Counted from the stretch's first letter, positions 2,312 through 31,854 are shown. The stretch: 64,000 bases of DNA from Rebecca billardiae RCC1528 (GCA_965240325.2 OZ251223.1:1488001-1552000), one strand, 5' to 3'. Notes: generated from the sequence alone by a model not told the origin. Translations and numbers: made by a program.

Positions 2312-2753
2312 CGTGAGTGCCGCGCCTCTGATACCGAGATCGGACGCGAGACGAAGAGAAACGGCGGCGCTCTCCCGGCGGCGGAAAGCGCGGCCGCCTT
2401 ACCATTCTTTATTTACATATTCGATCGGATTACGACCATCGCCTTGACATAGGCACCATTTATTCACAACAGATTGGGGTGCATAGCAGAGTTCATTCCT
2501 TTATAGAGTTGCAAACGTGTATGGGCTATGTGCGCACCGGTCGTAAAGCATATCTCGCCATTCTTTGTATTATCTGGATATATCACAGCCAATCTTGAAC
2601 CAAATGAGAATTTCTCAAATTCTCAAAAGTTCGTAGCCTAAAGAGGGGTCAAGCTGGAAAGCCCATCACTCATAAGCAACCGCCCTTGCCTTAAGCCTGT
2701 CACAAGCCTGGCCCAATCAACCAACGGCAACTCAGACACAGAAGTACTTTGCT

Positions 2754-2808
2754 AATCTCGCCTGCCTGAGCTGTACATGTGCGTCTCGTATTCTGACTGA
2801 GTGAACTG
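2754..2808 (-). mobile_element. Degenerate terminal inverted repeat (right end) of TIR family T1
   Basis: AATCTCGCCTGCCTGAGCTGTACATGTGCGTCTCGTATTC...AACTG matches the copies at 6122, 9160, 12200-12255 and 17023-17050. Confidence 0.7.
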
Positions 2809-2961
2809 TCGCTAACTATAGTGGTATGACGACATCAGTAGTTATAGCAATTCGAAGATTCATGAGCAGCCGGTCGTCAATGATGCCAGTGCATCACCGC
2901 GGTCCCAGCAATAATTATATATTATATATAATAATCTCATCAGCAGTCTGATTGGCAGCCG

Positions 2962-12487: not shown

Positions 12488-13478
12488 TGGGCGGCGCGCG
12501 CCGCGCGGGCGGGATGGCTCGGACCCATGCGCGCCTTTGAGCGCCCGGCGACCGCGCGCGCATCGGCTTCCTCCGCCTGCAAGTCGCCCGCGCCCGCGGC
12601 GGCCGCCCGCTTCGAGGGGGTTGACTGCGCCCGAGCCTGCTCGCGGCCGAGCGCAGGGATGAGTTGAGCGCGGCGCGAGGCGGCGATCACGATCGGGCGA
12701 TCGCATGCGCCCATCTGCGCCCTATTTGCCTCGGCGCGACAGCTTCAGCGTGCGTATGGGACCCCACTTGTCAGGCATGTCGGGGAGCGGGCGAGCTCTG
12801 TCGGCCAGCGTGTCCGCCCGCGCCGCGTGCGCGAAGGGCTCTACGCATCGGATGTCGCTCCGTGGCGTCTCGTGATGTCTTCGCTACGCAAGCTGGCGGG
12901 CACGGTTGGTCCGCATCCGTAGTCATGGGGACGTCCACTGATGCCGTGTGCACCACTGTGACAGAACTCAAGAAGCAACTTCTTCTCGACCAGAGTTGTC
13001 GTCAGCATTGACGCACGTTGCGAGCTGGCAGAGCAGTGGATGGCATGACCTTGGTGGCCCACGCGGGGCTGTGCACGGCCATGGCCATGCACTGATGCCG
13101 GTTGTGACGTGTTTCCGCGTCGTATGGCCCTGTGCGCACGCGGCGCGGGCGGACACACTGGCCGACGGTGCTCGCCTGCTACCCGACATCCCTGACAAGT
13201 GGGGTGACATACGCACGCTGAAGCGGTCGCGCCGTGGCAGATGGGGCGCATATGGGCGCACACGATCGCCCGATCACGATCGCCGCCTCGCGCCGCGCTC
13301 GACTCATCCCTGCGCTCGGCGGCGAGCAGGCTCGGGCGCAGTCAACCCACTCGAAGCGGGCGGAGGTCGCGGCCGCGGGCGACTCGCAGGCGGAGGAAGC
13401 CGATGCGCGCGCGGTCGCCGGGCGCTCGAAGGCGCGCATGGGTCCGAGCCACCTCGCCAGCGCGGCGCGCGCCGCCAA
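12488..13478. repeat. Long inverted repeat (arms of ~350 bp, 12488-12839 and 13127-13478), foldback/MITE-like
   Basis: The arms are reverse-complementary with scattered mismatches. The ORF track shows mirrored translations (12283..12714 - and 13234..13794 +). Confidence 0.9.
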
Positions 13479-13581
13479 CAGCAAGTCATCGACAGCAGAG
13501 CGCGTGGAACGCCGCGACGTCGACGTCGCCCGCCCGCCCCCGCCCCTTCTCAACGGCCGCGGCCCCGCGTGCGCCCAATGT

Positions 13582-13630
13582 GGTCCGGGAGCTCAAAAGG
13601 TGCAACTTGCACCTTTTGAGCTCCCGGACC
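13582..13630. repeat. Perfect 49-nt palindrome (24-bp stem, 1-nt loop)
   Basis: GGTCCGGGAGCTCAAAAGGTGCAA-C-TTGCACCTTTTGAGCTCCCGGACC. Confidence 0.95.
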
Positions 13631-13741
13631 GTGTCCGAACTAATATCGCCTTTCTGGAACGGGTGGGACAACGCACGGACTCACGACCGCAGGCGGACGG
13701 GAAGCCTCCACCTCCCGCGCGCACCCGGCCGCGCGCCCGAC

Positions 13742-15158
13742 ATGTACGCACATGGCAAGGAGTCGAAGCGGCGGCGGCTGGAGACCGTGACTGAGTTCAG
13801 CGAGCGGGTGTGCGCGGAGACGCCGCTGCACGTGGGGATGCACGTGGCGTTCCCGTCCATTCCGGGTGGGCAGATCAACTGCATCGGCAAGCTGGTCTGG
13901 GTGTCACCCACTACTGCAGGGCCACGTCCCGGGCACGGCGGAGGCGGCAGCGGCGGCGGTGGCGGGCGGCGCGGCACGGCACTGCAGTGCCGTGCCGTGC
14001 CGCTGCGCACATGCCGGCGCGGCCGTGCCGGCGCGGCACGGCAGCAAGGTGGTGGCGGCGCGGCTGCTACGACGCGCGAGGTCGTGGTGATGTCCGCGAA
14101 TGGCCGCAGCGAGCGCATGCTTGACATTGCGCTGCGCGTGCGCCCCACGCGCGCTGCAGACGGCGCGGTGGAAGCCTCTCCCTCTACAGCGCAGTTGCCC
14201 GCCGCTGCGCATGCAGCGCTGCCGCCGACGGACGCGGACGGTGTTGCGCCCTCGGGCATATCTGAGATCGACTTGCGGTCGCCCACACGGTCGCCCTCGG
14301 GCGTACTGGTGATCGACCTGCGGTCGCCTACACCGAGCCACGCTGGTGACGAAGACGACGAGGCGTGTGAGCAGGGAGCTGCGCACGACAGCGCTGATGC
14401 GCCAGATTCCTCGCCGCAGCCACAGCCGCAGCCGCCGCAACCGCCGCAGCAGCCGCAGCCGCAGCAGCGGCCACAGCCGTTGCAGCAGCAGCAGCCGCCG
14501 CAGCAGCAGCCGCCGCCGCAGCCGCAGCCGCAGCAGCGGCCACAGCCGCAGCCGCAGCCGCAGCCGCAGCCGCAGCCGGCGATGGGGGCGGCGCAGTCAG
14601 GGCCACTGCCGCCGCAGCAGCCCGCCGCGCCGCCGCCGCACCAACTGCCGCCGCAGCCGGCGGGCGCGGTGCCGCTCGCGCCGCCGCAGCAGCCGCAGCC
14701 GCAGCCGCAGCCGCCGCAGCCGCAGCACGCGCCGCAGCCAGCTGCCGCGCCGCCGCAGCCCGCGGCCGCGCCGCCGCCGCCGGCCGGCGCGGCCGGCGCG
14801 GCCGGCGCCGCCGCCGGCGGCGCGGCCGGCAAACAGGTGCGCATGGAGGACGTGCTAGAGTACCTCGGCCTTGTGAAGAAGCGCTTCGAGAGTCAGCCGC
14901 ACATCTACAACCAGTTCCTCGAGATCTTGAAGGAGTTCCAGGCGCAGTCGATCGACACGCCCGGCGTGATCGAGCGCGTGAGCACGCTCTTCCACGGCTC
15001 GCGCGAGCTCATCCTCGGCTTCTACACCTTCCTGCCGCCCGGGTACAAGATCGACTACGTGAACGACCGCGTGCACGTGCAGCACACGCCCGCGTGCGCG
15101 CCCACGCCCGCGCCGCCCGCGCTCGCGCCCGCGGGCGGCGGCGGCGGCGGCGCGGTGT

Positions 15159-15189
<31 letters not shown>

Positions 15190-16573
15190 GTACGGCGCGG
15201 CGGCCGGCGCCGGGCCGGCAGGCGGCGCGCCGCCACAGCCGCAGCCGCAGCCACAGCCGCAGCCGCAGCCGCAGCCGCAGCAACCGTCCTCCGGCCCGTT
15301 GGCCCTCGATGGCCAGTCGCACACGCTGGTCAAGGGCATGCAGAACTGGCTCAATGTGGACGTGGCCAAGTACAGCGCACCAGAGGCGCTGCTGTCCGCA
15401 GTGTGCACCCTGTCTGGCTACTACGCGGAGGCGCTCGACGCGTTCCAGCGCTCTGAGCTGCCGGCGGAGCGCTTGCTCGAGATTGCTCAGCAGCTGCGCA
15501 CGTGTTGCTTTGCCGAGGAGAGCGGCTCGCTCCGGCCAGTGCCTAAGCTGATGGAACTCGTCACGGCTCGGCTGTTTGGCCCACCGCAACCGCAGCAGCA
15601 GCCGCCGTCGCAGCAGCAGCCGCAACCGCAACCGCAGCAGCAGCCGCAACCGCAGCAGCAGCAGCAGCAGCCGCCGCCGCCGCAGCAGCAGCCGCAACCG
15701 CAGCAGCAGCAGCCGCCGCCGCCGCAGCAGCAGCAGCCGCAACCGCAGCAGCAGCAGCAGCCGCAACCGCAGCAGCAGCAGCAGCCGCCGCCGCCGCAGC
15801 AGCAGCAGCCGCCGCCGCAGCCGCAGCAGCCGCCGCCGCCGCCGCAGCAGCAGCCGCAACCGCAGCAGCAGCAGCAGCCGCAACCGCAGCAGCAGCAGCA
15901 GCCGCCGCCGCAGCAGCAGCAGCAGCCGCAACCGCAGCAGCCGCCGCAGCAGCCGCCGCCGCCGCAGCAGCCGCAACCGCAACCGCAGCAGCAGCCGCCG
16001 CCGCCGCAGCAGCCGCCGCAACCGCAGCAGCAGCCGCCGCTGCCGCAGCAGCCGCCGCAACCGCAGCAGCAGCCGCCGCCGCCGCCGCAGCAGCAGCAGC
16101 CGCAGCAGCAGCCGCAACCGCAACCGCAGCAGCAGCCGCAACCACAGCAGCAGCAGCAGCAGCCGCAGCAGCAGCCGCACAACCTGGAGGCGGGCCACCG
16201 AATCCCCGCGCAGCAGATACTCGCTACGTTCGCGCAGCAGCTCAAGTGCACCATCTGCCTCAGCATCTACGAGGATCCTCACTCGCTGTGGTGCACGCAC
16301 AACTTTTGCAAGGCGTGCATCAGCAAGCACTTGCGCGAATCGACCGAGCACGCATGTGCGCGCACGCGCGGCCGCGCGGGCACACGGCCCCGTCCACACG
16401 TGAAGCTGCGCCCGCACTCACACCCGACCCCACCCTCCCTCCCTCCGCGCGCCGTGGCGCCAGGCCCGCTGTGCAGGGTGCCCGTGTGGGTGCGGCAGCT
16501 CAGGCCCAACAGGGGCCTCGCTGATATCATGGACGCGTACACAAGACTCTCGGGGGAGGGGCGGGCGGAATAG
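13742..16573 (+). CDS. Gln/Pro-rich protein with a Sin3-type PAH domain and a C-terminal C3HC4 RING finger
   Basis: PAH: [73 protein letters not shown]: CTIC...CTHNFCKAC...C|PLC, restored by a 108-nt GT-AG intron at 16356-16463. Start codon uncertain. Confidence 0.8.
15583..16180 (+). repeat. Coding (CAG/CCG/CAA)n poly-Gln/Pro tract
   Basis: About 200 codons almost entirely Gln and Pro. Shorter tracts lie at 14418-14720 and 15230-15285. Confidence 0.95.
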
Positions 16574-17022
16574 CCACCGCGCTGTGGCAGCGCTCACCTG
16601 CTTCCTGCGCCAGCGGCAGCCAGCACGGGCCCGGAGCGCCAGCGGTAACGCCTGCAGCCGGGGCTGGGCCGGGCTGAGCAGCGCCGTGGGGCTGCGCGGC
16701 GCAAGACGCCGCAGCTGGCTGCGGCCGGGCCGGCAGGCGTCGTCGCCAAGGCCGAATTCCCTGCCCCGCTCAGCGAGGGCACCTCGGCGACACCAGTGTC
16801 AGCGGCGGCGATGCGCCCCGGCGCTGTCGCTGATGGGCCACAGCCTGCCTCGTCGCTCGGCCGGGGTAGCCCTACCCCAGCCGGCCGGGGCGCTCAGCTT
16901 GTCCGCGCGAGGCCGCCGCGGAGCCCGCGGACGGCGGTTCCGAATATCCGATGCCACTTCTGCGGACCGTTTTTATATATGCCATCATGTCGATATCGTC
17001 GGACTGCTCTCCCGCCAGCTAC

Positions 17023-17125
17023 TGCCTGCCTGAGCTGTGTGCGTCTCTTATGGAATATGGCCCGCGGTGCAGGGCGGAGCGCGTAGCGTGGAGCCCCGCC
17101 GGGGGCCCTCACTACGTTCATCAAC
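17023..17125 (+). mobile_element. Truncated T1 TIR joined to the 5' end of Helentron-like family HB
   Basis: TGCCTGCCTGAGCTGTGTGCGTCTCTTAT followed by TATGGCCCGCGGTGCAGGGCGGAGCGCGTAGCGTGGAGCCC, which is nearly identical to 39337-39380. Confidence 0.75.
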
Positions 17126-17263
17126 GTTATTGTCGTCGCAAATAATTGCAATAAAAAGAGCTATACTGCTACGCGCTTTACGACGACGATGATGAGATGA
17201 CGATCTGAGACGATGACACGATCATCGCGTCGTACTACGGTAGAGCTCTAGATAATATATAAG

Positions 17264-20200
17264 CTACTTGACGATGAAGTCTGCGAGCGAGCCCTCCGTG
17301 TCCGAGTCGGCGGCGCCTCCGTCAGAGTCACAGCTCGCAATCGTGCCGCCGCCGTCGTCGTCATCACTCCCTTCGGCGTCGTGATGAGACGAGCGCTCAG
17401 CGTCGTCGCCGCTGCCGCCGGCGTTGGAGCCCACCCAGTGGTCGCTGCCGCTCTCGTCGTCAGACACCTCGTCGTCATCCGAGGACGACGACGTCGCCGA
17501 TGCGCCGGACGCGGCCGGCTCCGAGGACGTGCGGACGTCGCAGCCCGCCGAGGGATTGGCGCGGTCGCCCTCCGCGCCATGCGCGGGCTCCGCTGTGGAG
17601 CTCTCGGCGGCCGGGCCGCGCGGGCTGCGGCGTCGGTGCAGCTCAGCGCCCCCGCCTCCGCGCTGGCGCATCGCGCGGCCCCGCACGCGCGAGCGCGCGA
17701 TCCGCGCCAGCTGCGCCTCCAGCTCGTCGAGGCTGCTCGCTCCGCTCTGCGCGTCCGAGTCGTTCCCGTCAGAAGCTTCGTCGGAGCCTTCTTCTCGGCG
17801 GCCGTCCGCGCGGCGCGCAGGCCCTGGCGGCAGTCCCACCCTGGGCTCGGGCGAGGGCGTGCCTTCGACGTCGCCCCGCCCGGCGGCGCTGCTGCCGCGC
17901 GCGGGCGAGGCGGAGGAGGAGGGCTCCGCGTCGTCGTCGCTCGACTCGCCGCCGCGCACGATGAAGCCACCCAGGGAGTCCTCGTCCGAGGAGGCGGACG
18001 CCTCCGCGTCCGCGCGGCCGTGGCCGCGCACGAACCGAGCGCCCGCGGCGGCGGCGCGGCGGCGCGGCGCGGCAGCAGCCGCCCGCGGCCCGCGCCGCTG
18101 CGCGCGCCGAGGCGCTGGGCGCAGCTGCGGCTGAGAGGCGGCCGCCGCGTCCGAGCCTGGCGCAGGGCTGCGCGCCGCCCCAGGCGGGGACGGCTGCCGC
18201 GCTGCACCGTCGCGCGGCGAGCGCGCGCGCTCGGCGGCCGATTGCGCGTGCGCCGCCGGCGAGCCGGCGCCCGCCGCGCCGCCGGCCGGCGCCTCAGCCT
18301 GCAGCTCGGCGAGACGACGCAGCCGGCGGCGGCCGGCGGGAGCGTGTACGGCGCGCGCGGGCGAGGGGGCAGAGGGCACGGGGATGCCCTCCGCCTCCTC
18401 GCCCGCCCCGGTGTGCGCGCCCACCACGCCACGCGCACGGGGCCCGCCGCTCTGCTCCAGCTCTGCGGTGCGCAGCAGCCGGCGGCGCGGCTGCTGCGGC
18501 CGAGCGCCTGCGCCCGCGTCGTCGGCAGCGGGCGGCGCGTCGGCGCGGGCAGGCTCGGCGCGCGCTTGCGCCTCGGCGGCGCGCGTGGGCTGAACGGCCG
18601 AGGCCGCGTGCGCCGGCTGCGCGAGGTGCGCGGGGCTGTGCACCCGCGGATGCTCCGACGAGCCCGCCGCCGCCGCCTCTGCGCGCCGCGACGCCTTCCG
18701 CCGCTCCGCTCTGGCCGCAGCGTCCGCGTCGGCGGACGCCGTGTCCTGCCCCGAAGCGCGCCGCGCCGCGGGCACGCGCCGGTGGGCGGGCGGTGTGTCG
18801 GCGCGGGCGGGCTTGGCGGCGGGCGATGGAGCGGCGGGCGTGGGCGACGCGCGCCGCTCCGCGCCGTTGCACGGCGGCCGATTCTCATCGGCCGTCGCGG
18901 CGTCGAGTGCTCGGCGCACCACCAGCCCAGCGCCGCCACCACCGCCGCTCTCAACACCCGCCGTCGCGGCCGCGGCCGACGGATTCGAGTCTGCAGCCGG
19001 CAGGGCCTTGCTTGCCGAGGGCGCGCGCGACCCGCCCTCGGCGGGGGGCTCGGCCAGCTCGGGCGGTGGCGAGTCGAAGGCGGGCTGCAGCGCGGTGTCG
19101 CTGTCCGCCACGGACAGCGGCGAGCCAGCAGCCGAGTCCGCCGCGCCCGGGCTCCCATCGCCCTCGGCGCGCGCCGAGCGCGCGCGCGCCGGCGAAGGCG
19201 AGTCGCGCGCGTGGTGAGCTGCCGCGCGCGCCGCCGCGCCGCCCGCCCTCACGACGAGGGGGAGCAAGGGCGGCGGCGAGCGCGCGTCGCTGGGCCCGTC
19301 GTCGCGCAGCGCGCGCAGCGCGTCCGCCACGAACCCTTCCACCGCGCCGAGCGCGCGCGCCGCCGCGTCGACGGGCAGACCATCCTCGCAGCCGGCCGGC
19401 GCGTCCGCGTCCGCGGCGGCGCGCGCCGCGCCCGTCGCTTCGTCGGGCGGCGCTAGCAGCGCGGCGCGCACGCGCGCGCCCAGCACGGCCAGGGCGAGAT
19501 CGCCGGCCTCGACGGCGGCGGCCCAGCCGCAGCGCGGCGCGACGAGGAGGTCGGGGAGCAGCGCGTGCCGCGCGAGCGCCGCCGCGTCCTCCGCGTCTGC
19601 GTCCGCGTCCGCGTCCCGCTGTTCGCGCCCGCACGGCGGCCGCGATGCGCCGGCCTCCGCCGCCGCAGACGCCGCATCCGCCGCCGGCCCGAGCGAGTCC
19701 AACAGGGCGGCGAGCGGCGCGCGGCCGGCGCCGCGGGCGGAGGCCAGCTCGCCGCAGGCGAGCACGGCGCGCGCGCCGCTCGCGCCGAAGAGGGACGGCC
19801 CGCCGCCCTCGCGGCACGCGCCGCCGCCCTTGGGCGCGCGCGCGCCATCGGCCGCGTCGGCCGCGCCGCCGTCCGCGTCGGCGGCCGCGGCCGCGAGCAG
19901 CAGGGTGGCGAGCGCGGCGCGCGGCGGCGTCGGCGTCGGCGCGCCGGCTGCTCCGCCGTCGAGCTGCGCGGGCGCGCCCGCGCCGTGCGAGGCCACGCTG
20001 CCTCGCAGCCCGAGCCTCTGCGCTCGCGCGGCGCACGGCGCGCACGCGCACGTCGGCGCGACGCCGCGCAGCGTGCGCACCAGCCACCCAAACGCGCGCC
20101 GCCCCGGCCTCGGGTCGTGCTCCGAGGGCGCGGGCATGCGCGGGTGGTAGAGCACACACAGCGACGTGCGCGCGCGCGTGAGGCCGACGTTAAGCAGACG

Positions 20201-23200
20201 GTGGCCGTGCGCGTGCGCGATGGTGGAGTAGGCCAGACGGCCGCCCGCCGCCGGCGCCGCGCCGGTGCCAGCCGCACGGCTGGCTTCGGACGGCCCCCCG
20301 CGCGGCGCGGCGGCGGCGCGGCGCGGCGCGGTGGCTGCGGCGCCGCCGCCGCGGCCGCCACCGGCGGCGCGGCGGCCCGCGCCGCGGCCGCGCGCGCTCG
20401 GCCGCGCGGCCTCGCCCTCCGCGCCGTCCGCCTCTTCTGCGCCCACAGCGCCCTCGGCCTCGCCGCCCGCCGCCTCGAGCAGGTCGAGAGCCGCAAGCGC
20501 GGCCTCGCCCTCCGCCGCCTCCTCCTCCTCGCCGCCGCCGCCGCCGCCCTCGGCGCCGCCCTCGGCGCCGGCGCACGCGCCGCCGGCCGCCGCGCCCGCT
20601 GCGCCGCCGCCGCCGAGCGCGTCCGTGCGGCGCGCGGGCGGCGAGAGGAGTGCGCAGAAGACGACCAAGTCGCGCTCCTCCCCCTGCACGCCGTCGATCG
20701 ACGCGACGAACAGCGGCGCGTCGGACGCGTGCGCGCGCTCGGGCGCGCGCACGAACAAGACTGCGTCGCCGCCGCCGCCGCCGCCGCCCGGCCCGGCCGG
20801 CGCGCCGGCCCCGCCGCCGGCGGCTCCGCCGAGCTCGGCGGCGGGCACAAGGCCGAGAGGCGCGCGGCTCGCGCTGAGCAGCGCGCCAATCAGCGCGCGC
20901 TGCGACCTGTTCACAGTCACCACGCCGATCGACATCGGCTCGCGCCTCCCCTCAGCGGCCACGAGCGCGGCCGCGACGATGTCCAGCGCGCCCAGCGCCT
21001 GCGCCACGTTGACGTAGCCTTGCGGCGACGCGGGCGACGGAAAGGGTCCTGGGCCCACGCCCCAGCGCGCGCGCACCGCCGCGCCCACCAGATCGTCAAG
21101 CTCCGCGCGACGCTCCGCGTTGGACGCCATGCTGCCCAGCGTGGGCACGCGCACCAAGCCCTGCGCGAGCGCGCACGCGCGCGCGCGCTCGGTGTTGTCG
21201 TCGGCGCCGCCGCCGCCGCCCAGGCCCGCGCCGCCGTCCGCCCGGTCGCCGCCGGCGCGGCGGCTCTCGAGCTCGGCCGCCGCCGCGCCGCCCGCTGCCG
21301 CGCCGCCGTGCGCGGAGCGCACCGCGCGCGCGGACGGCACGCACTGCAGCGAGCCCCCGTAGAACAGCTCGTTCGACAGCGCGATCATCTGCGGGTGCGC
21401 CGACCTGTAGTGCCACCGCAGCGGCGCGAGCGGCAGCGTCGCGCGGAGGCACTCGTCTAGCAGCCCCGAGTGCGCGCGCCCGCCGCCGCCGCCCGCCGGC
21501 TGCGGCGGCGGCAGCTGCTGGTCATCGCCGACGACGCCGAGCCGCGCGCCGAGCGCCGCCAGCGCCAGCCCGTGGCTCAGCGGCAGCTGGCTCGCCTCGT
21601 CCACGAGCACGACGTCGAAGGGCGGCGCCGATGAGCCGAGGACGCCCGAGCGTGCGCCTGCGCCGTCGCTGCCGCGAGCTGCGCGCGCGGCGGCACGCGG
21701 GCTGCAGCCCAAGTCTGCGCCGCCGGGGGCCGGGGGCGGGCGGAGGCGGCAGCCGCGCGCGCCTGCCGCCTCGTCCGCACACGCCGCGTCCGTGTCGTCC
21801 GCATCCGCGTCCGCGTCGTCCACGTCGTCCGCGTCCGCGTCGTCCGCGTCCGCGTCCGCATCCGCGTCCGCGTCTACGTCCGCGTCTGCGTCCGCATCCG
21901 CCGCGTGCGCCGCGTGCGCGGGCGCAAAGTGCCTCAGCGCTTCCTCTGCCGTCATCAGCGTCACGGGGCGCAGCTCGAGCAGCAGCGACGCCAGCGCGGA
22001 CGCGGGGGGCGCGCCGGGCTCGCGCGCGCCGAGGGCGAGCGCCGCGTGCAGCCGCCGGCCGTGCGCGCTCGCCGGCGCGCACAGCGCCGCGCGCAGCGCG
22101 CCGGCCGCGCGCGCGCCGCCGCGCGCGCCGAGCGCGCGCGCCGCGCGCGCGCCGCACGCGGCGCGCGCGAGCGCGCGCGCCGCGCGCTCGCGCTGCGCGG
22201 CGGCCGCGCGCAGCTCGCGCAGCGCGCCGAGCGCGGCGCCTTCGGGCGGCGCCGCGCCCTGCGCCGCGTCGGACGGCACGCCCTCCGCGCCCTCGGCCGC
22301 GTCCGCCGCCTGCGGCGCCGAGCGCAGCAGCTGCAGCCGCGCCGTCGCCAGCAGCAGGGCGCACCGGCCACGCAACGCTCGGCCACCGTCTGCGGCGTGC
22401 GCTGCAAACTCCAGGGCGGCGAGCGCGCGCGCGGTGTGCGCGCACGCGCCGCCGGCGCGGCTTGAGGCGCGCGCGGCCTCGGCGGAGATCAGCTGCAGCG
22501 ACTTGGCGCGCGCCGCGCCCTCCGCGCCGCCGCCGTCCATCAGCATGGCCGCCAGCCGACACAGCGGCCAGCGCGCGGGCGGCAGCGCGCGCGGAGCGCA
22601 GCAGCCGCCGCCGCACCGGGCCCAGGGCACGCACACGTGCGCGCTGAAGCGGGCGAGGGCGTCGGCGTCGGCGTCGGCGGCGTGCGCGGCGCGCGCGGGG
22701 CACGCCGCAGAGACGCCGCCCTCCGCCGCGCCACCGGCGGCGCCACCGGCGCCCGCCGCGCCGGCCGCGCCGCCGTCGCCCGCCGCGTCCGCCGCGCCGC
22801 CGTCGCCACGCGCAGTCTGACGCAGCAGCGGCAGCGCGGCGACGAGGGCGTCGACAGCGGCGGCGACGCTCCACTCGGGTGCGTCGGCATGCTGCGCGTC
22901 GTCCACGCCCGCGCGCGCGCCGCTCGGCGCGTCCGGCCCCGCCCCGCCGCACGCCTCCGCCTCGCGCGGCGCGCGCGCGGCGCTGAGCGCGCGCGCTCGC
23001 GCCGCGCGGACTGCGCCCAGCGCTGCGCTGAGCCTTGCTTCGGCCGAGTCGAGTGCTGCGCGCGCGGTGCGCTCGTGGGCGAGCGCGGCTGCGGCCTCGT
23101 CGTCGTGCGCGCCGTCCTCCGCCTCCGCCTCCGCCTCGCCCTCGCCGTGCGCCTCCGCATGGTGCCGCGCGAGCGTCGCCGGCGCCGCCACCACACGTCC

Positions 23201-23438
23201 GCATTCCGCACAGACGCAGCGTGGCCGCGCGTCGGCACGGCACAGCTGCACCCCGCGCGCGCGGCCGACGCGCGAGCCCGACGCGTCGCGCGGCGCGCGG
23301 AGCGGCTCGGGCTGCGTCGGGCTCGGCGCCCAGCCCTCGCCCAGCATCTCCAGCAGCACCGCGCGCGCGCGCGCACTCACCGCCGCGCCGGCCGCCGCGC
23401 GCGTCAGACGCGCATCGCGGCTCACGGCGCCGCCGTCC

Positions 23439-23502
<64 letters not shown>

Positions 23503-24317
23503 TCGCAAACAGCTGGTGCGCGCGCAGCGCGGGCACGCCGCCGGCGGTGGCCTCGGCGAGCTTCGCCTGCAGCACGTCGAGCGCCACGCGCATCCGCGCG
23601 ACCACGAGCACGCGCGCGCCGCCCGCCGCGAGCGAGGCCACCGCCGCGGCGAGCGTTGCAGTCTTGCCGCAGCCGGGCGGCCCTCGGACGACGACCGCGC
23701 GCGCGCCGAGCAAGGCGCGCGCCGCGCTCTGCTGCGACGCGTCGAGCGGGGTGAGCGGGAGCAGCCTCGCGCACGGCCCGGCGTCGCGCGCGCCCGGCCG
23801 CGCCGCCGCCCTCGGCCCGCCCGGCGGCGCGCCCGCGAGCCTCGCGAACGCACCGCCGCGCGCCGTCCACGCCGCGTGCGCGGCGGCTAGCGCAAGCAGC
23901 GGGCAGTCGGCGGCGCGCTCGGCGGCGCGCTCGGTGGCGGGGACGAGGAGGAGGAGGGACGGGCGCGCGTGCGTGGCGGAGGCGCGGTGCGCGGCGTGGA
24001 GCGAGGTGGCGCCCGCCGCGCCGCAGCCGCCCGGCAGCGCGGGCGAGGCGAACGGCCGCGCGCCCGGCGGCGCGCGCACACGGCAAACCCCGCGCCCGCC
24101 CGCCGCGCACGCGCGCGCGCTCACCGGTAGCAGCCACAGGCCAGGGAGGCGCTCCGCGCCGCCGCCGCCGGCCGGGGCGGGCGCGGAGGCCGCCGCCGCG
24201 CCGAAGCTGAGCAGCGCGCGCGCGCCCTCCGCGCCCGCCGGCGGCGCGAGCGCGCGCAGCCCCGCGCACAGCTCCACGCCGGGCAAGTGCCACGCGCGCG
24301 CGGCGGCGGGCGCCGAC

Positions 24318-24348
<31 letters not shown>

Positions 24349-26180
24349 GCGGCGTGCGGCCGCCGGGCGGCGCGGCCGCGGCCGGCAGCGTGCCGCGCCC
24401 GTGCTCGCGCGCCGCGTCCGCGTCCGCGCGGTCGATGTGGGCGGCGTCGGCGCACACGGACTCGGCGTGCAGCACGAGCTCGTCGCCCGCGCGCAGCGCG
24501 CCCTCGACCCACTCGAGCGCGCGCAGCACAAGCGCCTCGCCGCCGCCGCCGCCAGCCGCCGCGTCCGCGCGCCCACGCGCGGCGGGCGCGGCGGGCGCGG
24601 CGGCGGCGCGCAGCCGCCAGCCTGCGCTGAGGTGTCGGCCAAGGGCGCCGCCATCGTCGGACGCCAGGACGTCGCGCACGAGCGTCGGGAGCGGCGGCAC
24701 GGCGGGCGCGCAGCCGGAGCCCTCGCACCCCGCGCCCGCCGCCGCGCACAGCCGCACCGCACGCCGCGCGCCCGGCCGGGGGCGCGCCGCCGCTGCGCGC
24801 GGCACCACCGCTAGCCACGCGCGCGCCCATGAGCGCGCGGCGCGCGCGCGCTCCGCCGCGCCGCCGCGCGCCGCGCCGCCGCACGCGCCGCCCTCGGCGT
24901 CCGAGCCGTCGGTGCGGCTCTCGCGCTGCTCCTCCGCGACCTCCTCCTCCTCCTCCTCCCCGTCCAGCAGCTCCGTGTGCAGCCAGAGGTACGCGAAGAA
25001 GGCCCCACCGGGCGAATGTGCATGCAGCGCGCTCAGAGCGCCGAGCAGCATGGCCGCCGACGCGGCGCGCGCCGGTCCGACGCGCGCGCGCCGCCGAGAG
25101 CGCGGTGCGGGCTGTGCGGCGTGGGGGGGCGAGGGCTCGTGCGCCTCGGGCGCGAGCTCCTGCTGCGCGAGCGCGTGCGCCGCGCACGCCACCTCCAGCG
25201 CCGCCTCGCGCTCGCTCGGCGCCCCCGCCGCCCCCCACCGAGCTGACAGCTCAGCCGCAGCGGCGCGCGCGCGCGCGTGCGCCGCGGCGCCGTGCCGCGC
25301 GCCGCCGTGCCGCGCGCCGCGCGCGCTCGAGGGCGAGCGAGCGCGGCCGGCGGAGGAGGCTGGCGAGCCGAACGCGCCGGCGCCTACCGCACCGTCACCA
25401 AGCTCGCCACCGCCGCCATCGCTGTCGGCCGCGCCGCCGCAGCCAGCCGCGCCGCCGCCGTCCGCCGCCCACGGCTGTGGCGGGCTCGGCGGCGACAGCG
25501 CGCGGGCCGACGACGGCGATGTTGCCTCATCGTCGGCGGTGGCGCGCTCGTCGGCGGGGGCGACGCAGAGCCCGCGCGTCGGCGCGAGCGCGTCGCCCGG
25601 CACTCGCCAGTACGCCACGCACAGCGGCGCGCCGGCAGCCGCGCCCGCGTGCCCGGAAGCGCCGCCGCCGTCGCCGCCCGCTCCGCCGCCGCCCGCGCTG
25701 CCGCCGCCGCCGCCCTCCGCGCCGCCGCCGCCGGGGTCAGAACCGCCGCCGCCGCCGTCGGCCGCCTTGCCCTCCGCTGAGGCGCTGCGCCGGAGCGCGC
25801 CGGGGCGCACGACCGAGTAGCGGAGGAGGCTGCCGGGCGGCACGTGCGACAGCCGGTCCACCACCTCGAGCACGCCGCCCTCGCCCCCCGGCGTCCGCTC
25901 CAGCGTCCGCAGCAGCACCGGCGCCGCGGCGGCTGCGTGCGCCCAGACTTGCGCACCCACCACCTCCCGACAAAGCGCCCACGCGGCGCGCGGCGCGTCG
26001 GCGCGCGCCGGGCCGAGGGTCGGGGGTGCGGCGGGGAGGGCGCCGCTGACGAGCACACGCGCGCGCACGCGCGGCACGACGCCGCTCTCCGTTGCACGGC
26101 GCACGCCTGCGGCCTCGGCGGCGTCTGAACCGCCGCTGCCGCCGCCGCTGCAACCACCGCCGCCGCTGCCGCCGCCACAT

Positions 26181-26222
<42 letters not shown>

Positions 26223-28973
26223 TCGTCGTCGTCACTCGGCGAAGCTAGGGTGACGTGCACGCGCGTGCCGCCGCCGAGGGCGCGGACGTCGTGCGCGAGC
26301 GCGGCGGCGAGCGCGGCGGCCGACAGCGCGCCTTGCCACGCGCCCCCCTCCATCGCCCCCGCCGCCCGCCCGCCCGCCTCCGCCGCCTCCGCCGCCTCCG
26401 CCGCCGCCGCCGCCGCCGCCGCCTCCGCCGCCGCCTCCGCCTCCGCCGCCGCGCGCGGCCCGGTACTCTGCGCGGGCTCGAAGGCGTGCAGCACGCTCGC
26501 GTACCCGCCGAGCCGATGCAGCCGCGCGCAGAGCAGCTGGCACGCCTCCGCGGAGCTCGGCTCGCTCGCAGCCGCCGCGCTCGCCGCGCCGTCCAACACA
26601 GCGCGCACTCCGGCGGCCGCGGGGCGCGCTAGGTCGGCCGCGGCGCGCGAGCGGTCATGGCAGAGGATGGCGCAGCCGCCGACGCTGAGCACGCTGCGGC
26701 GCGCGGCGCCGCCGTCGCCGCCGGCCGCGGGCAGCCTGAACGCGAGCACCGGACTGCCGCCCGGCGTGTCCGGGAGCGCCGCGCCCAGCGCCTCGCGCAG
26801 CGCCAGCACCCAGGCCGGATGCGCCGACGCGGCGCGCGCCGGCGCGGCGCGCGCCGACGCGGCTGCCGCAGCGGCGGCGACGGCGGCGGCGGCGGCCGGT
26901 GCGGCGGTGGCGGCGGCGGCGGTGGCGGCGGCGGCAGAAGCGGCGGCGGCAGAAGCGGCGGCGGCGGGTGCTGCCGGCTCCGCCGTCTCGGGCTCGGCGG
27001 GCGCCGCGCACATCGCGCCGAGCACCGCGCCGATCACGAGGGCTTGCTTGCGCACGCTGCGCCGCGCCCACTGCTCGAGCGGCGGCGCGCCGGCCGGCGC
27101 GGCTGCTGCTCCGACGCTGAGAAAGCAAACGGCGGCGCGGCGCGGCAGCCGCGCGCACGCGTCGGCGAGGAGATACGGGGCGCGCGCGGGCCAGCGCCGC
27201 GCGCTCGGCGGCAGAGCGAGCGAGACGAGCAGCACGTCGCAGTGCGCGCCGCCGGGCTCATGCGCCGCGCGCACGCGCAGCGCGCCGCTGCCGAGCGCGC
27301 CGGCCAAGGCCGTGTGTTGCAGCGCGGCGGCTCGCATCAGCTCGGCCTGCTCGGCGCACAGCGCGAGGGCGAGGACCGTGGTGGGCGCGCATGGGCACCC
27401 CGCGCCCGCGAGCAGCTCGGCCGCGAGGCGGAGGAGCGCCGCCGCCTCGCCCAGGTTCACAAGCCCGCCCTTGAGCGCACGCAGCGCCGAGCCCACCGCG
27501 CCGTCTGCGCCGGCTGCTGACTCTGCCCCGGCTGTGGCGGCGCCCGGCGCGGCGGCGCATTGCGGCGCGTCGGCGCGCAGCGCACGCAGCACGGAGCCGA
27601 CGGCCGCGCGCGCGCCTGCCAGGTTGTTCGGCGTGCGCTCGGCGCGCCACCACGGCCTGGTGCACAGCGAGACGAACGGGAGCGGCTCGGCGCACGCCGA
27701 CGCGTCGCAGAGCGGCGCGGCCGCGCGAGCGATGCCGACGCGCGCCGCAGCCGCGGCCGGCGGCGGCGTCGTCGTCGACGGCGGCGGCGGCGGCGTGGGC
27801 GCAGCAGCGGGTGCAGCAGCAGCTGCTGCTTCGAGGAGCGGGCGCAGCGAGGCCGCCGCCGCCGCCGAGAGCGGCAGCTGGCGCGACGGCGTGCCGACGC
27901 GCCGCAGCAGCGAGCGCGCCTGCTTGCTCGCTGCGGCGCGCGCGCCACTCAACGGCGCGTCCGCGCCGCCTGCGCGCCGGGCGGCGGCGGGCGGCGGCAG
28001 CGCGCGCGCGCCGTACGCGCACGCGAGGCGCGCGCGCTGCGGCGCGGCGCAGCGCGCCTCGAGCAGGTCGCGCACGCGCGCCGCGCCCGAGCCGCCCGGC
28101 GCGTCCGCCAGCAGCACACAGCCGCGTGGCGCCAGCCTCGCGAGGCAAAGTGCGAGCGCGGCCGCAGGCACTTCGGAAGCGCCGTCAAGAATTAAAACGT
28201 CGAATTGGGGCGGAGCGCGCGCGCCGGCCGCGTGTGCGAGGGGCGCGGAGCACGCGGCCGCGGCGGTGGCGAGGGTGACGGGGCACAGCCGGTGCAGCAG
28301 CGCCGCGTGCGCCGCCGCGGCGCGCGCGGGCTCGATGCCGTGCGCAGCGCCCGCAGTGCCGCCGCACGCGGCCGCGGCGACCGCCGCCTCCGCCGCGCTC
28401 AGCCGCGCGAGCTGTCGCGCCATGCGCGCGCGCACGCCGCTCTCGAGCGCGGCGCGCGCGGCGGCCTCGCGCGCGGCGGCGTGCGCGGCGCACGCCACGA
28501 GCTGCGCGCCCTCCGTGACGGGCTGCGCGAGCGCGCGCGCGCAGCCCTCATGCGCGCACGCACACGCGCGCGCCGCGAGCGCGGCGGCGCGCTGCGCGGC
28601 GCGCACCGCTCCGCGCCCCGCGCTTCGCTCTCGCCACTCGGCGAGCCGCTCGCCGAGCGCGCGCAGCTGCTCGGCCGCGGCCGCGCCGTCCGCCTTGAGC
28701 GTGCCCGCGCCCGCGCCCGCCGCCGCGAGCACCGCCTCCGCCTCGTCCAGGCCGTGCGCGCCCGCGCCGCCGCCGCCGCCGGCAGCGCACAGCCATAGAA
28801 CACGCGCGTCGGTGAGCGCGGCTGCGTGCGCCGCGGCGAGGCCGAGCACGCGCGTCTTGCCCGAGCACGCGCCGCCCTCGACGAGGACGAGCGGCAGCGG
28901 CGGCGCCGGGCTCGGCGCCGCACCCTCCGCCGGCCGAGCCCCGCACGCCGACCCGTCCGGCTCGGCGCGCGCG

Positions 28974-29006
<33 letters not shown>

Positions 29007-29816
29007 TTGGCGGCGGCGCGCACCGCTGCCACGCAGAGATCGAGCGCCCGGCGCTGCGAGCTGTCGATTGGGAGGGCGTGGACCGCGCGCAGCTCCGGCG
29101 CCGAGAGCGAGGCGTCGTCGTCCGCCGGCGGCTCGAGGCACTCCGCCGCGCGCCCGGCCGCCGCCTCCGCCGCCGCGCACCCGCCGCCGCCCCCGCCGAG
29201 GCGGCCGCCGAGCGCGTCCGCTAGCGCAAGCGCAGATGCACACAGCTGCGCGCACACGCGCTCCGCGCAGTCCGGCGCGCCCTCCAGGGGGAAGAGGTGC
29301 GCGCCTGGCAGCGCGCTCCCGTCGGCGAGCAGCGCGCGCAGCAGCGTCGACACGCCCACGCCGCCGGCGCTGAGAGCGCGCGACCCGCCGCCTGCACCAC
29401 CGCCCACACCCCAGCCCTCAGCCACCCCCTCTGCCGCGGCGCCGGCGCGGCCGTGGGCGCTCACTGCGCGCCGCAGGCTGCTGAGCGAGCGCGCGGCGAG
29501 CACGCGCGGCGAGACGAGCGCGGGGCCGGTCTGCGACATGCGCAGCGTGCCGTCGGCGAGCGGCTCCACCGTCACGGGCACGAGCACCACCGGCTGGCCG
29601 TCGTCAGCCCCGGCGCTCGACTCCGACACCGCCCGAGCGCGGCCGCGCGAGCGCGCGTCGCCTGGCCATCGCTCGAGCGGCCCGCTCGGCGGCGCGCGCG
29701 CGCGGTCGAGGGCGGCGCCGTGGACATCGTCTTCGTCGTCGTCGTCGTCTGTGCCGCCGCTATCGTCCTCGTCCTCCGCGTCGAGCCACACGCCGACGCA
29801 CAGGTAGCAGCACACG

Positions 29817-29849
<33 letters not shown>

Positions 29850-30604
29850 CCACCGCCGTCGGCACGCAGCAGCAGAGCAAGCCGGTCGCGCGCGAGCGCG
29901 GCCTCGGCGACGGCGCCGCACGCGTCCGCGCGGGACGTGAGCTGGCACAGCCGCACGGCCGGGTCGCCGAGGCACGCCGCCTCCAGCGCGCCGAGCAGCC
30001 CCTCGCACAGTCGCGCACTCTCGGAACTCAGCTCGATGCAGTGGCCGCCACGCCCGCCCGGCTCAAGAGCGGCGCGCAGCCGGCTGCCCGCGCGCCCGAG
30101 CGGGAGGTCGCGCCACAGCTCGCGCCAGGCGGCATCGACGCGCGTGAGGTCCGCGTCGAGCTGCGCCGCCGGCGCGTCCTCCACGCCCAGCGCCTCGTCG
30201 GGCGCGCGCTCGAGCGGGCACAGCAGGCGCTCCGCGGCCGCGGGCGATGCGAGGAGCCACGACCACACGTCCACGAGCGCCGTGTCCGCGCCCGCCTCGC
30301 ACCACGAGGCGGAGACCTCGGAGGAGCGCGTGACCAGATGACCGTTGCGCAGGAGCTGGAGCATCTCCGACTCGCTTGACGCGGTGACGATCGGCGGCCG
30401 CTGCAGCCGCCAGCCGACGCCTTGCGCGCGCGCGGCCGCGACGGCACCCGCCGGCGTCACGACCAGGATGGGCGCCTCGGCCAACGCCGCGAGTGCATCG
30501 GCGAGCGCGCGGTCCAGGCTCGCATCGTCCGGAAGCTCCTCCCGCCGCTGATGAGTCGCCTTGCGAAGCGCGCGAGCGAGGTCCGAGCTGGCGCCCGTCG
30601 TCAT
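17264..30604 (-). CDS. Giant (~4,446 aa) tandem DUF4011-like / SF1 (DNA2/NAM7-like) helicase protein with a C2H2 finger
   Basis: Intact C-proximal motifs: LDASQQSA, VVRGPPGCGKT, RVLVVARMRVALDVLQAKL, FDVVLVDEASQ, VVGDDQQLPP, LRWHYRSAHPQMIALSNELFYGG, IDGVQGEERDLVVF, RLLNVGLTRAR. Degenerate N-proximal copy: IDSSQRRA, EGGACSGKT, FDVLILDGASE. Stop-free in-frame introns cannot be excluded. Confidence 0.85.
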
Positions 30605-30762
30605 CGTACCGTGGCGCCGTGCAGCTGCCCGTTTGAAGTTGAAGTTCGAGCTGACCGGCCCCCGGCCGGACAAAAAATATTCCGGGCGAAAGACCGAGCG
30701 AGCGAGAGGCCGAGCCCATGCGCGCGGCGACTACGAGCGGCCGGTGCGCCGCCGCGCTCGGC

Positions 30763-31854
30763 ATGATGCTGCTGCCCCGCGCCGCCCGCGCACTGAGCAC
30801 GCCGGCGGCGACGAGGGTCGACCTGCGCTCCGACACCGTGACCAAGCCCACGCCCGCCATGTACGAGGCGATGACGACGGCCGATGTCGGGGACGATGTG
30901 TTTGGCGACGATCCGACCGTGAATGCGCTCGAGCGGCGCGTCGCGCGCATGTTCGGCAAGGAGGAGGCCGTCTTCGTGCCGACGGGCACGATGGCCAACC
31001 TCATCGCCGTCATGGCGCACACGTGGGAGCGCGGCTCCGAGTACATCGTCGGCGACCGCGCGCACATCTTTCTGTACGAGCAGGGCGGCGGCGCGCAGCT
31101 CGGCGGCGCGCACCCGCGGACGGTGCCAACGGCGACGGACGGCACGCTCGGGCTCGACGACCTGCGCGCCGCGATCCGCGCGGAAGACGTGCACTGCCCG
31201 GTCACGAAGCTCATCTGCCTCGAGAACACGCACAACGTGTGCGGCGGCCGCGTGCTCGCGCCGCCGTACATGGACTCGGTGGGCGCGCTCGCGGCCGAGC
31301 GCGGGCTCGCGCTGCACGTGGACGGCGCGCGGATCTGGAACGCGATGGCGGCGCTCGGGGTCGAGGGCGAGGCGCTCGTCCGGACGGCCGACAGCGCCGC
31401 CGTCTGCCTCTCCAAGGGGCTCGGCGCGCCCGCGGGCTCGCTCTTTGTCGCGTCGCACGATCTGTGCGCGCGCGCGCGCCGGCTGCGCAAGGCGCTGGGC
31501 GGCGGCTGGCGGCAGGCGGGCGTGCTCGCGGCGGCGGGTCTGCATGCGCTCGACCACAGGCTGCCGCGGCTCGGCGAGGACCACGCGCGCGCCACCGAGC
31601 TCGCCGCCGGCGTCTCCCGCATCCCCGGCCTGCGATGCGACCTCTCCTCCGTCGAGACGAACATCCTCTTTTTTGATGTGGACGAGGGCGCGACCGTCGA
31701 CGCCGCGGCGCTGGTTGCGGCGTGCGCGGCGCGCGGGGTCGAGTTCCTGGCGTTTGGCGAGCGGCGCTGCCGGTGCGTGACGCACCTGCACGTCACCGCG
31801 GACGGGGTCGAGTACGCGCTCGACTGCATGCGCGCCGTCATGGAGGCTGCATAG
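30763..31854 (+). CDS. ltaE: Low-specificity L-threonine aldolase (PLP-dependent), probably organelle-targeted
   Basis: Motifs DLRSDTVTKPT, GDDVFGDDPTV, PTGTMANL, LENTHN, LHVDGARIWN and CLSKGLGAPAGS. Confidence 0.95.
   Translation: MMLLPRAARALSTPAATRVDLRSDTVTKPTPAMYEAMTTADVGDDVFGDDPTVNALERRVARMFGKEEAVFVPTGTMANLIAVMAHTWERGSEYIVGDRAHIFLYEQGGGAQLGGAHPRTVPTATDGTLGLDDLRAAIRAEDVHCPVTKLICLENTHNVCGGRVLAPPYMDSVGALAAERGLALHVDGARIWNAMAALGVEGEALVRTADSAAVCLSKGLGAPAGSLFVASHDLCARARRLRKALGGGWRQAGVLAAAGLHALDHRLPRLGEDHARATELAAGVSRIPGLRCDLSSVETNILFFDVDEGATVDAAALVAACAARGVEFLAFGERRCRCVTHLHVTADGVEYALDCMRAVMEAA

Follow-up and report, generated by a model that had tools for sequence, protein, structure and literature searches.

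A giant tandem gene of the alga Rebecca billardiae, with an active-looking helicase and a pseudo-helicase copy, probably belongs to a eukaryotic family related to bacterial DUF4011 helicase-nucleases

What is encoded by a 13.3-kb open reading frame (ORF) in the genome of an alga, and are its two halves copies of one module? This question is raised by a stretch of 64,000 nucleotides of Rebecca billardiae RCC1528 (GCA_965240325.2 OZ251223.1:1488001-1552000; the whole stretch is hereafter called the window and all nucleotide coordinates refer to it), in which a coding sequence (CDS) located on the minus strand (17264..30604), as are all the features of the gene described below, encodes a protein of 4,446 amino acids (aa). 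A preliminary description of this DNA had proposed two tandem modules similar to the bacterial DUF4011 helicase-endonuclease Hhe. Sequence comparisons support the presence of an active-looking helicase (unit 2, residues ~2121-3720) preceded by a pseudo-helicase copy (unit 1, residues ~262-1236). The gene is probably a member of an undescribed eukaryotic family that descends from bacterial DUF4011 helicase-nucleases, such as Prometheus ProA and Hhe.

Unit 2 is a complete Upf1-like superfamily 1 (SF1) helicase. Its core (20069..23761, residues 2282-3512) retains intact motifs Q, I, Ia, II, III, IV, V and VI, including DASQ, GPPGCGKT (residue 2308, nt 23683-23660), FDVVLVDEASQ (residue 2996, containing DEASQ), GDDQQLPP (residue 3026), WHYRS (residue 3064), VQGEERD (residue 3306) and NVGLTRAR (residue 3472, window 20168-20191), and is followed by ARHALLPDLLVAPRCGW at residue 3678. 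The preliminary description had credited this unit with all catalytic helicase motifs, and every motif that it quoted is indeed found where it had been placed. Pfam recognizes AAA_11 (2287-2351) and AAA_12 (3196-3318) in unit 2 and nothing else notable, and detects no CH domain, DNA2 nuclease or NFX1 fingers in the protein.

The best matches in the bacterial model libraries, all of them partial and well under the curated cutoffs, are ProA (NCBIfam NF058533, 118.8 bits) and PDC-S37 (PADLOC, 113 bits), followed by the models of Hhe (87.1 bits for NCBIfam NF042953 and 72 bits for PADLOC PDLC02194), the MOV10-like Mokosh protein MkoA (41 bits) and the IGHMBP2 family (TIGR00376, 36 bits). A HMMER search with residues 2283-3482 against 1.84 billion representatives from all domains of life retrieved a few long proteins sharing 40-54% identity in the core and, below them, a plateau of ~125 proteins at 85-97 bits. 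The top 150 matches include only members of the algal family and DUF4011 proteins, and the 2,784 proteins found at E<=1e-10 are nearly all of prokaryote type. The plateau proteins tested with Pfam all carry DUF4011, MTES_1575, AAA_11 and AAA_12 (24/24) and most of them carry DUF3320 (22/24); the NCBIfam ProA model is matched by 24/24 plateau proteins, and one of them reaches 1866 bits with ProA (cutoff 1500) compared to 751 bits with Hhe (cutoff 2000). A full-length bacterial hidden Markov model (HMM) built from 24 plateau proteins detected the DUF4011 region in 117 fetched bacterial-type proteins, the nuclease region in 127 and the long helicase insertion in most of them. A family profile of 125 positions (motifs II-IV) gives a median of 99 bits (range 75-127) for bacterial DUF4011 proteins, this set being a sample of top matches, so that closer bacterial sequences exist and the typical distance is not described by these values. 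The same profile gives 46 bits for DNA2, 35-37 for UPF1/NAM7, 29 for SEN1 and 23 for ZNFX1, IGHMBP2 being within 23-46. Among solved structures, unit 2 as query matched DNA2 at 37 bits and UPF1 at 33 bits.

The bacterial DUF4011-helicase profile matches the algal protein at 2282-2352, 2989-3096, 3210-3247, 3291-3317 and 3459-3484. An insertion between motifs Ia and II spans ~640 residues in unit 2 and ~550-600 residues in the bacterial family. When unit 2 of the family is compared with the bacterial profile by hhalign, an unbroken alignment of 758 columns (E 4e-60) covers the template from 670 to 1581, in which the Ia-II insertion (~550 residues) is paired nearly column for column with the bacterial one. 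Two other searches were less discriminating: a word-indexed protein search with the helicase core returned 3 matches only, swamped by low-complexity words, and an ESM Atlas feature search with residues 2100-3580 of the relative P0004 returned generic bacterial SF1 clusters only. Overall, these comparisons support the grouping of the helicase core with bacterial DUF4011 helicases and not with UPF1, SEN1 or DNA2. The DUF4011 type that had been proposed at first is thus retained, but the nearest named family is ProA, Hhe coming second.

In the preliminary description, each unit was opened by a DUF4011-like segment. The one of unit 2 (23762..24244, residues ~2121-2281; LLSFG ... LWLLPVS ... FASPAL ... 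LLLLVPATERAAERAADCPLL) corresponds to a block of the family alignment, 'fL..G ... P.vLvPv ... FfNP', that matches weakly the bacterial DUF4011 core 'YLALGF..APLLL.PV.L...N.TLL' (hhalign P 0.002, probability 14%). The one of unit 1 (29489..29821, residues ~262-372; CYLCVGVW, an acidic insert and PVVLVPVTV ... SPRVLAA) aligns with the block 'F.CL.ALG ... vPI.F.PV ... FLNPLLLAA' of the relatives, whose match with the same DUF4011 template positions (YLALGF..APLLL.PV..N.TLL) is also weak (hhalign P 0.005). An AlphaFold model of the pre-helicase domain, built from an alignment of eukaryotic sequences only and representing the domain of P0004, not that of the alga, has a predicted local distance difference test (pLDDT) of 65, with 70-87 in the core, and a predicted template modelling score (pTM) of 0.66. 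When it was used in an ESM Atlas shape search, the first row and 6 of the 10 rows shown were clusters in which 69-100% of the members carry PF13195 (DUF4011), with template modelling (TM) scores of 0.50-0.52 over 174-188 residues. The claim thus draws on weak hhalign matches and on the fold of the relative, Pfam giving no match to DUF4011, and the evidence leans towards the pre-helicase domain being a divergent DUF4011.

Downstream of the helicase core, the region 19445..20068 (residues ~3513-3720, ending in ...LLPDLLVAPRCGW) carries a C-x-C-x2-C cluster and a decayed tail that resembles Vsr/MTES_1575 nucleases. The cluster (window ~19970-20068, residues ~3513-3545) comes straight after 'FGWLVR.L', is invariant in the 12 aligned family members (12/12) and is missing from the bacterial consensus; it may form a metal site together with the His-rich blocks 'YSTIAHAHG' and 'HP.M.AP.EHD'. 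The tail block of the family, 'vG..g.GGG...iAVA ... AiA.LaD ... RD...LP.mL...KvGW', matches the MTES_1575 pattern 'VG.S.YRIDLAV ... LGIECDG ... RDRD.LR..VL..LGW' (hhalign P 0.001). The positions of the catalytic Asp of the bacterial 'RIDLAV' and of the catalytic Glu of 'IECDG' are not conserved in the family, and the tail of the alga is further eroded than those of its relatives, only '...LLPDLLVAPRCGW' being left; neither Pfam nor the bacterial HMM finds an MTES_1575 match in the alga. RAP domains are counted among the Vsr-like PD-(D/E)xK folds. For the low-confidence model of the P0004 tail (pLDDT 59), the best PDB match in a structural search against representatives was the FASTKD4 RAP module (Z 6.8 over 117 aligned residues), followed by a mitoribosomal chain of T. 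gondii (Z 6.5) and the BpuSI nuclease domain (Z 5.9), with I-Bth0305I and the DUF559 protein NGO0050 lower among the matches; Foldseek of the same model against PDB gave no match below E 0.08. Two methods, sequence alignment and modelled fold, thus agree on a decayed Vsr/MTES_1575-like remnant at the end of unit 2, which makes this assignment plausible. The same tail had initially been attributed to each unit, and this does not hold for unit 1, whose end shows no nuclease-like tail in comparisons with the bacterial nuclease (hhalign P 0.19) or with the tail of unit 2. No match to the C-terminal DUF3320 was found with Pfam or the full-length bacterial HMM.

The helicase part of unit 1 (26897..29083, residues ~508-1236) contains IDSSQ and a Walker A motif, GGACSGKT (residue 577, nt 28853-28876), a degenerate Walker B in FDVLILDGASE (residue 801; DGASE, nt 28172-28204) and a RecA2 remnant keeping the motif IV-like 'N..EA' and the motif V-like 'CDVLLVS'. 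Motif III is gone, Walker B is reduced to DG or DD and the residues of motifs V and VI are lost; the Walker A is G-x4-GKT in the alga, and Arg replaces Lys in most relatives. Simple comparisons were uninformative: BLASTP with SEG filtering finds nothing between unit 1 and unit 2, phmmer finds nothing between unit 1 and all the fetched proteins, and Pfam gives a weak P-loop match only. Profiles of relatives were much more sensitive. The N-terminal module is conserved among long relatives (25% identity over 770 residues between P0004 and P0008, E 1e-41), and a unit 1 profile based on the N-terminal half of each of six giant relatives matches the alga collinearly at residues 328-812 (independent E-value 8e-7) and 986-1213 (independent E-value 9e-9), for a total of 30.5 bits compared to 2.2 bits for the best of 300 local shuffles and -3.0 for the reversed sequence. 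Unit 1 of the relatives matches the bacterial helicase profile in hhalign with 97% probability and in two pieces, one from the Q motif through the P-loop to motif Ia (E 2e-10) and the other from upstream of Walker B through motif V (E 7e-11). When the pre-domain is included, unit 1 and unit 2 form a single alignment of 549 columns (E 1.5e-16) whose first columns fall in the DUF4011-like segments of the two units. By these alignments, unit 1 is a genuine degenerate second copy of the module. The doubled domain series, with a first copy that has lost Walker B and motif III, agrees with what had been recognized at first sight.

Is this organization peculiar to the alga? The preliminary description envisaged a defence helicase of horizontal origin kept in an alga. 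A lineage-specific acquisition is not upheld: the gene is part of a monophyletic family in which the tandem layout recurs in other organisms. The other members include (i) P0004, P0162, P0163 and P0164 (3,580-4,119 aa) from marine metagenomes, (ii) P0008 (4,048 aa), encoded on contig L002 next to a HAT-repeat/RRM gene, (iii) P0051 (3,346 aa) from the pelagophyte Chrysophaeum taylorii, encoded by an intron-containing gene with eukaryotic neighbours, (iv) P0114 from Pelagophyceae sp. CCMP2097, for which a six-frame search located unit 1 immediately upstream of the gene as annotated, divided among gene models, and (v) P0012 from contig L004, whose gene is split into pieces of 2,142 and 1,119 residues. 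A C-terminal SAP domain is listed in the precomputed Pfam annotation of the four proteins of the P0004 clade and was confirmed here in P0004; none is present in the alga. EukProt sequences labelled Picozoa sp. COSAG01 fall in the 90% cluster of P0164, although a contamination of these single-cell assemblies is possible. The tandem two-unit family is thus found in pelagophytes, a clade that includes Picozoa-labelled sequences, uncultured picoeukaryotes and the alga.

The relationships of the family were examined in an unrooted FastTree phylogeny of 11 family members and 96 bacterial proteins, based on 246 columns from six conserved helicase blocks; these short blocks were used because the alignment of whole proteins to the bacterial HMM with hmmalign lost the N-terminal block. 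The family is monophyletic (support 1.0), and no branch of the tree is longer than the one that carries it (0.98); within it, the alga is placed with P0008 and the P0004 clade, and P0011 joins the pelagophyte sequences. Since the tree is unrooted, it cannot show a nesting within bacteria, and we infer the bacterial origin of the family from the breadth of the prokaryotic proteins (the 2,784 mentioned above) compared to the patchy eukaryotic range. The family has marks of its own. The motif VI block 'YSTIAHAHG.RLLNVG...FGWLVR' shares 65-74% identity between the alga and relatives from other phyla. A C2H2 zinc finger (23147..23218, residues 2463-2486; C-x2-C-x12-H-x4-H) lies inside the helicase insertion of unit 2, as had been noticed from the start, with Cys and His ligands kept in 10/11 aligned family members, and is absent from the bacterial consensus.

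No description of a tandem eukaryotic family was found in the literature searched, in which the DUF4011 papers are all about prokaryotes. One paper mentions, without describing them, 'Gao_Hhe' DefenseFinder matches in a few eukaryotic genomes, among items too infrequent to be included in a figure (PMC11291487), and Hhe was not found in the supplements of that paper.

Several observations weigh against a descent from bacterial DUF4011 helicase-nucleases or limit its reach: (i) neither PF13195 (DUF4011) nor PF18741 (MTES_1575) has a Pfam match in the alga or its relatives, a search of eight pieces of the protein at E<=5 gave no DUF4011, MTES_1575 or zf-C2H2, and our own bacterial HMM has no DUF4011-region match in the alga; (ii) the ProA and Hhe scores are far under the curated cutoffs (1500 and 2000 bits) and cover motifs II-IV only; (iii) the hhalign signals are weak for DUF4011 (P 0.002-0.005) and for the nuclease (P 0.001), with probabilities of 7-21%; (iv) both structure models are those of the relative P0004, with modest to low confidence (pLDDT 65 and 59), and the Z of 6.8 obtained for the tail is in the 'middling' range; (v) the tree has no outgroup, so that bacterial ancestry rests on taxonomic breadth and not on nesting; and (vi) all functional statements are inferential.

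The history of the family that emerges from these comparisons is as follows. In its common ancestor, the module made of a DUF4011-like domain and an SF1 helicase came to be arranged as two tandem copies. The N-terminal copy kept its fold (and Walker A in the alga) and lost Walker B, motif III and residues of motifs V and VI, and the C-terminal copy kept all ATPase and helicase motifs and the insertion, gained the C2H2 finger and kept only a putative dead remnant of the Vsr-type nuclease. By analogy with Upf1 and DNA2, unit 2 would probably act as an ATP-driven SF1B translocase or unwinder moving 5'-3' on single-stranded DNA or RNA. Unit 1 would probably be a non-hydrolysing module that binds nucleic acids (and perhaps nucleotides) or a regulatory module, positioning or gating unit 2, and the dead nuclease tail would bind instead of cutting.

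The closest known system for comparison is ProA, the single protein of the anti-phage system Prometheus, present in P. aeruginosa and other prokaryotes, which combines DUF4011, a DNA2-like SF1 helicase with an insertion, MTES_1575 and DUF3320. According to PMC13700489 (citing van den Berg et al. 2024), Prometheus is a validated single-protein defence system that is related to eukaryotic R-loop-acting enzymes, is characterized by its helicase insertion and requires all four domains. The algal protein resembles ProA by its best named match, by the collinear helicase core and insertion, by the DUF4011-cluster fold modelled for a relative and, at the level of the family, by a Vsr-like remnant in the same position after the helicase. 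Unlike ProA, it lacks the region N-terminal of DUF4011 and DUF3320 and scores far below the 1500-bit cutoff; the algal family has lost the catalytic residues of the nuclease and carries the C2H2 insertion and a degenerate extra copy of the module in front. The algal protein is also eukaryotic, ~2.3x longer and equipped with low-complexity linkers, its defence role being at most putative. Hhe, a DUF4011 helicase-Vsr endonuclease (the system of Gao et al. 2020), belongs to the same superfamily, and the alga has the same motif signature, WHYRS..LI..SN..Y. However, the alga is below the 2000-bit cutoff of Hhe and has a dead nuclease, and Hhe fits it less well than ProA or PDC-S37 do. DNA2, UPF1/NAM7, SEN1/SETX, IGHMBP2 and ZNFX1 share with the alga the superfamily fold, the AAA_11/AAA_12 motifs and probably a 5'-3' translocation chemistry, but three parts of the family are missing from them: the long insertion between Ia and II, the domain resembling DUF4011 and the Vsr-like tail. 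Lastly, modules with the RAP or Vsr-like PD-(D/E)xK fold (RAP module of FASTKD4, DUF559 and I-Bth0305I) are the best structural matches of the P0004 tail model; with a low-confidence model, a Z below 8 and no family match at the sequence level, this likeness supports a fold and not a function.

What could such a protein do in the alga? With a dead nuclease, it could not share the mechanism of Hhe or Prometheus, should these act by cutting. Sequence features, namely the C2H2 finger, the SAP domain of relatives and the acidic C-terminal motifs 'FIV', 'VVIE' and 'VVVE', point to a possible nuclear role associated with chromatin or R-loops. A role in genome maintenance or associated with R-loops or transcription has, in our view, a little less than an even chance of being the right one, and it is likelier than the conservation of an antiviral role. 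The latter, in which the protein would be a nucleic-acid sensor or effector keeping the defence role of Hhe or Prometheus, for example against haptophyte giant viruses, seems unlikely. It is favoured by the ProA type of the nearest bacterial relatives, an experimental validation of Prometheus being reported in PMC13700489, and by Hhe, a single-gene defence system with helicase and nuclease domains whose triggers are in the DNA-metabolism cluster of T7 (10.1101/2024.10.10.617714). It has to contend, however, with the family-wide loss of catalysis in the nuclease, the presumed bacterial effector, which is further decayed in the alga, and with the absence of the bacterial N-terminal region and of DUF3320. 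Moreover, some bacterial DUF4011 genes are located outside defence islands, such as the large DUF4011 gene of P. aeruginosa, a core gene present in every isolate (10.1101/2022.11.11.516204), and no close relative was found on IMG/VR viral contigs, the best match (37% identity over the full block) being at the level of bacterial DUF4011 proteins.

A second alternative concerns unit 1, which might be a different SF1 helicase fused in front of the DUF4011-type helicase and not an internal duplicate. Unit 1 does lack the ~600-residue insertion, its Walker A and Walker B being ~225 residues apart, its Pfam matches are generic (AAA_19, AAA_11, AAA_30 and UvrD) and its score with unit 2 (150 bits) is not clearly above those with the bacterial profile (105 + 101 bits). 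The alignment of the two units is nevertheless continuous and begins, ahead of both Q motifs, in their DUF4011-like segments, and the unit 1 segment matches the same bacterial DUF4011 template positions as the unit 2 segment. We consider such a fusion improbable, and a doubling of the module remains our preferred explanation of the two units.

It should also be considered whether the frame corresponds to one functional gene at all. The ORF extends on the minus strand from 30673 to 17264 (4,469 codons), and the CDS, from the first ATG at 30604, comprises 4,446 codons and a stop; no other stop-free frame approaches the CDS length over 17264..30604. The G+C content is 80-84% in this stretch compared to 58-77% in the flanks, and off-frame ORFs reach 1,238 codons, so that the length of the ORF is by itself weak evidence. 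In DNA of 82% G+C, a frame arising by chance or decaying, or two genes read separately, could therefore be envisaged, especially as the protein contains 28% Ala, 13% Gly and long low-complexity stretches, and as the homologous gene is divided among separate public models at two loci, pelagophyte or uncultured. Against this stand a frame 3.6x longer than the longest off-frame ORF and G+C values of ~0.86, 0.70 and 0.91 at the first, second and third codon positions that are steady across all 600-nt windows from start to stop. The seven helicase motifs are also intact, the motif VI block is well conserved across phyla (see above) and both units are carried by one uninterrupted ORF in two other organisms (contigs L001 and L002). 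It is thus very improbable that the frame is not one functional gene, and the single ORF announced by the preliminary description is borne out by the 4,446-codon frame and its uniform codon periodicity.

The idea of an ordinary eukaryotic SF1B member (UPF1, DNA2, SEN1/SETX, IGHMBP2, ZNFX1 or MOV10) whose bacterial look would be a library artefact, to which generic AAA_11/AAA_12 matches in Pfam and a 'YRS'-type motif III/IV region also found in MOV10-type helicases lend some appearance, is barely tenable and largely refuted by the profile scores (23-46 bits for the eukaryotic helicases compared to a median of 99 for bacterial DUF4011 proteins, and 36 and 41 bits for TIGR00376 and MkoA compared to 119 for ProA), by the composition of the top 150 HMMER matches and by the long insertion that is collinear with the bacterial one.

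The remaining parts of the gene are of low complexity. The inter-unit region (24245..26896, residues ~1237-2120) is mostly composed of Ala, Gly and Asp, and no domain was detectable in it in the alga with Pfam and profile searches, whereas relatives hold conserved blocks there. The C-terminal tail (17267..19444, residues ~3721-4446) has no Pfam domain and contains two acidic 'SL..FIV' motifs at nt 17921-17986 and 17267-17299 (residues ~4207-4228 and 4436-4446). Short hydrophobic motifs flanked by acidic residues or Ser lie at the C-terminus or close to it, namely 'SLGGFIVRGGESSDDD' and the terminal 'SLADFIVK' in the alga and 'RRRVVIEADY', 'RRRVVVESDDE', 'RRRVIEIEEGDY' and 'SSFIEDDD' among the relatives P0051, P0011, P0012 and P0008; from their sequence, these motifs, recurrent in the family, resemble SUMO-interaction-type motifs.

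A few additional features of the family and its surroundings can be mentioned. The last Arg of motif VI is replaced by Ile, Val or Ala in all relatives (NVGL[ST]RA[IV]), and TRAR is found only in the alga, as in bacteria. The precomputed Pfam list of P0163 (3,994 aa) includes a ubiquitin domain (PF00240). Public models split the homologous giant gene in two or three in CCMP2097 (L030:4272-15290, MU657168.1) and on contig L004 (L004:3528-13360); in these split pelagophyte or uncultured loci, the unit 1 pieces are collinear and upstream of an annotated 1,648-aa protein. The helicase gene of CCMP2097 is flanked (L030:1-1194 and 16441-24544) by genes encoding a NACHT/AAA_16 protein of 2,074 aa and, on the other side, an ion channel of 2,408 aa with multiple repeats and a domain that binds cNMP. 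P0013 (2,782 aa) is a true DUF4011 helicase, scoring 866 bits with the bacterial profile, and has an extra partial SF1 piece (P-loop and Walker B) at its C-terminus (2393-2542), a doubling unlike the algal kind. In the window, unrelated genes are present on both sides of the helicase ORF. A beta-eliminating lyase gene on the plus strand (30718-31854, 338 bits) begins only 113 bp away from the ATG of the helicase, an arrangement suggestive of a bidirectional promoter region common to both genes. Downstream of the helicase and convergent with it, a plus-strand ORF of 1,110 aa (13241-16573) encodes a PAH repeat of the Sin3 type and, at its C-terminus, a RING finger.

Work on DUF4011 helicase-nucleases has until now dealt with them as anti-phage systems of prokaryotes made of a single protein, and their mechanism is largely obscure. 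Here, a defined eukaryotic family keeps the motor and the diagnostic insertion, with a module duplicated, one copy silenced and the nuclease killed. It would thus constitute a natural separation-of-function variant, indicating which bacterial parts are dispensable while the motor stays, and a worked example of a tandem of active helicase and pseudo-helicase whose gene is split or missed by public models. A more speculative proposal, which we regard as doubtful, makes the family a helicase of eukaryotic innate immunity that came by transfer from bacterial defence proteins of the Prometheus/Hhe type, in which unit 1 would be a silent sensor of viral nucleic-acid structures and unit 2 a motor for remodelling or marking them; if true, its targets would be the giant DNA viruses by which the blooms of haptophytes and pelagophytes are controlled. 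The family is also a candidate for connecting prokaryotic defence to the surveillance of eukaryotic genomes in bloom-forming algae of ecological importance.

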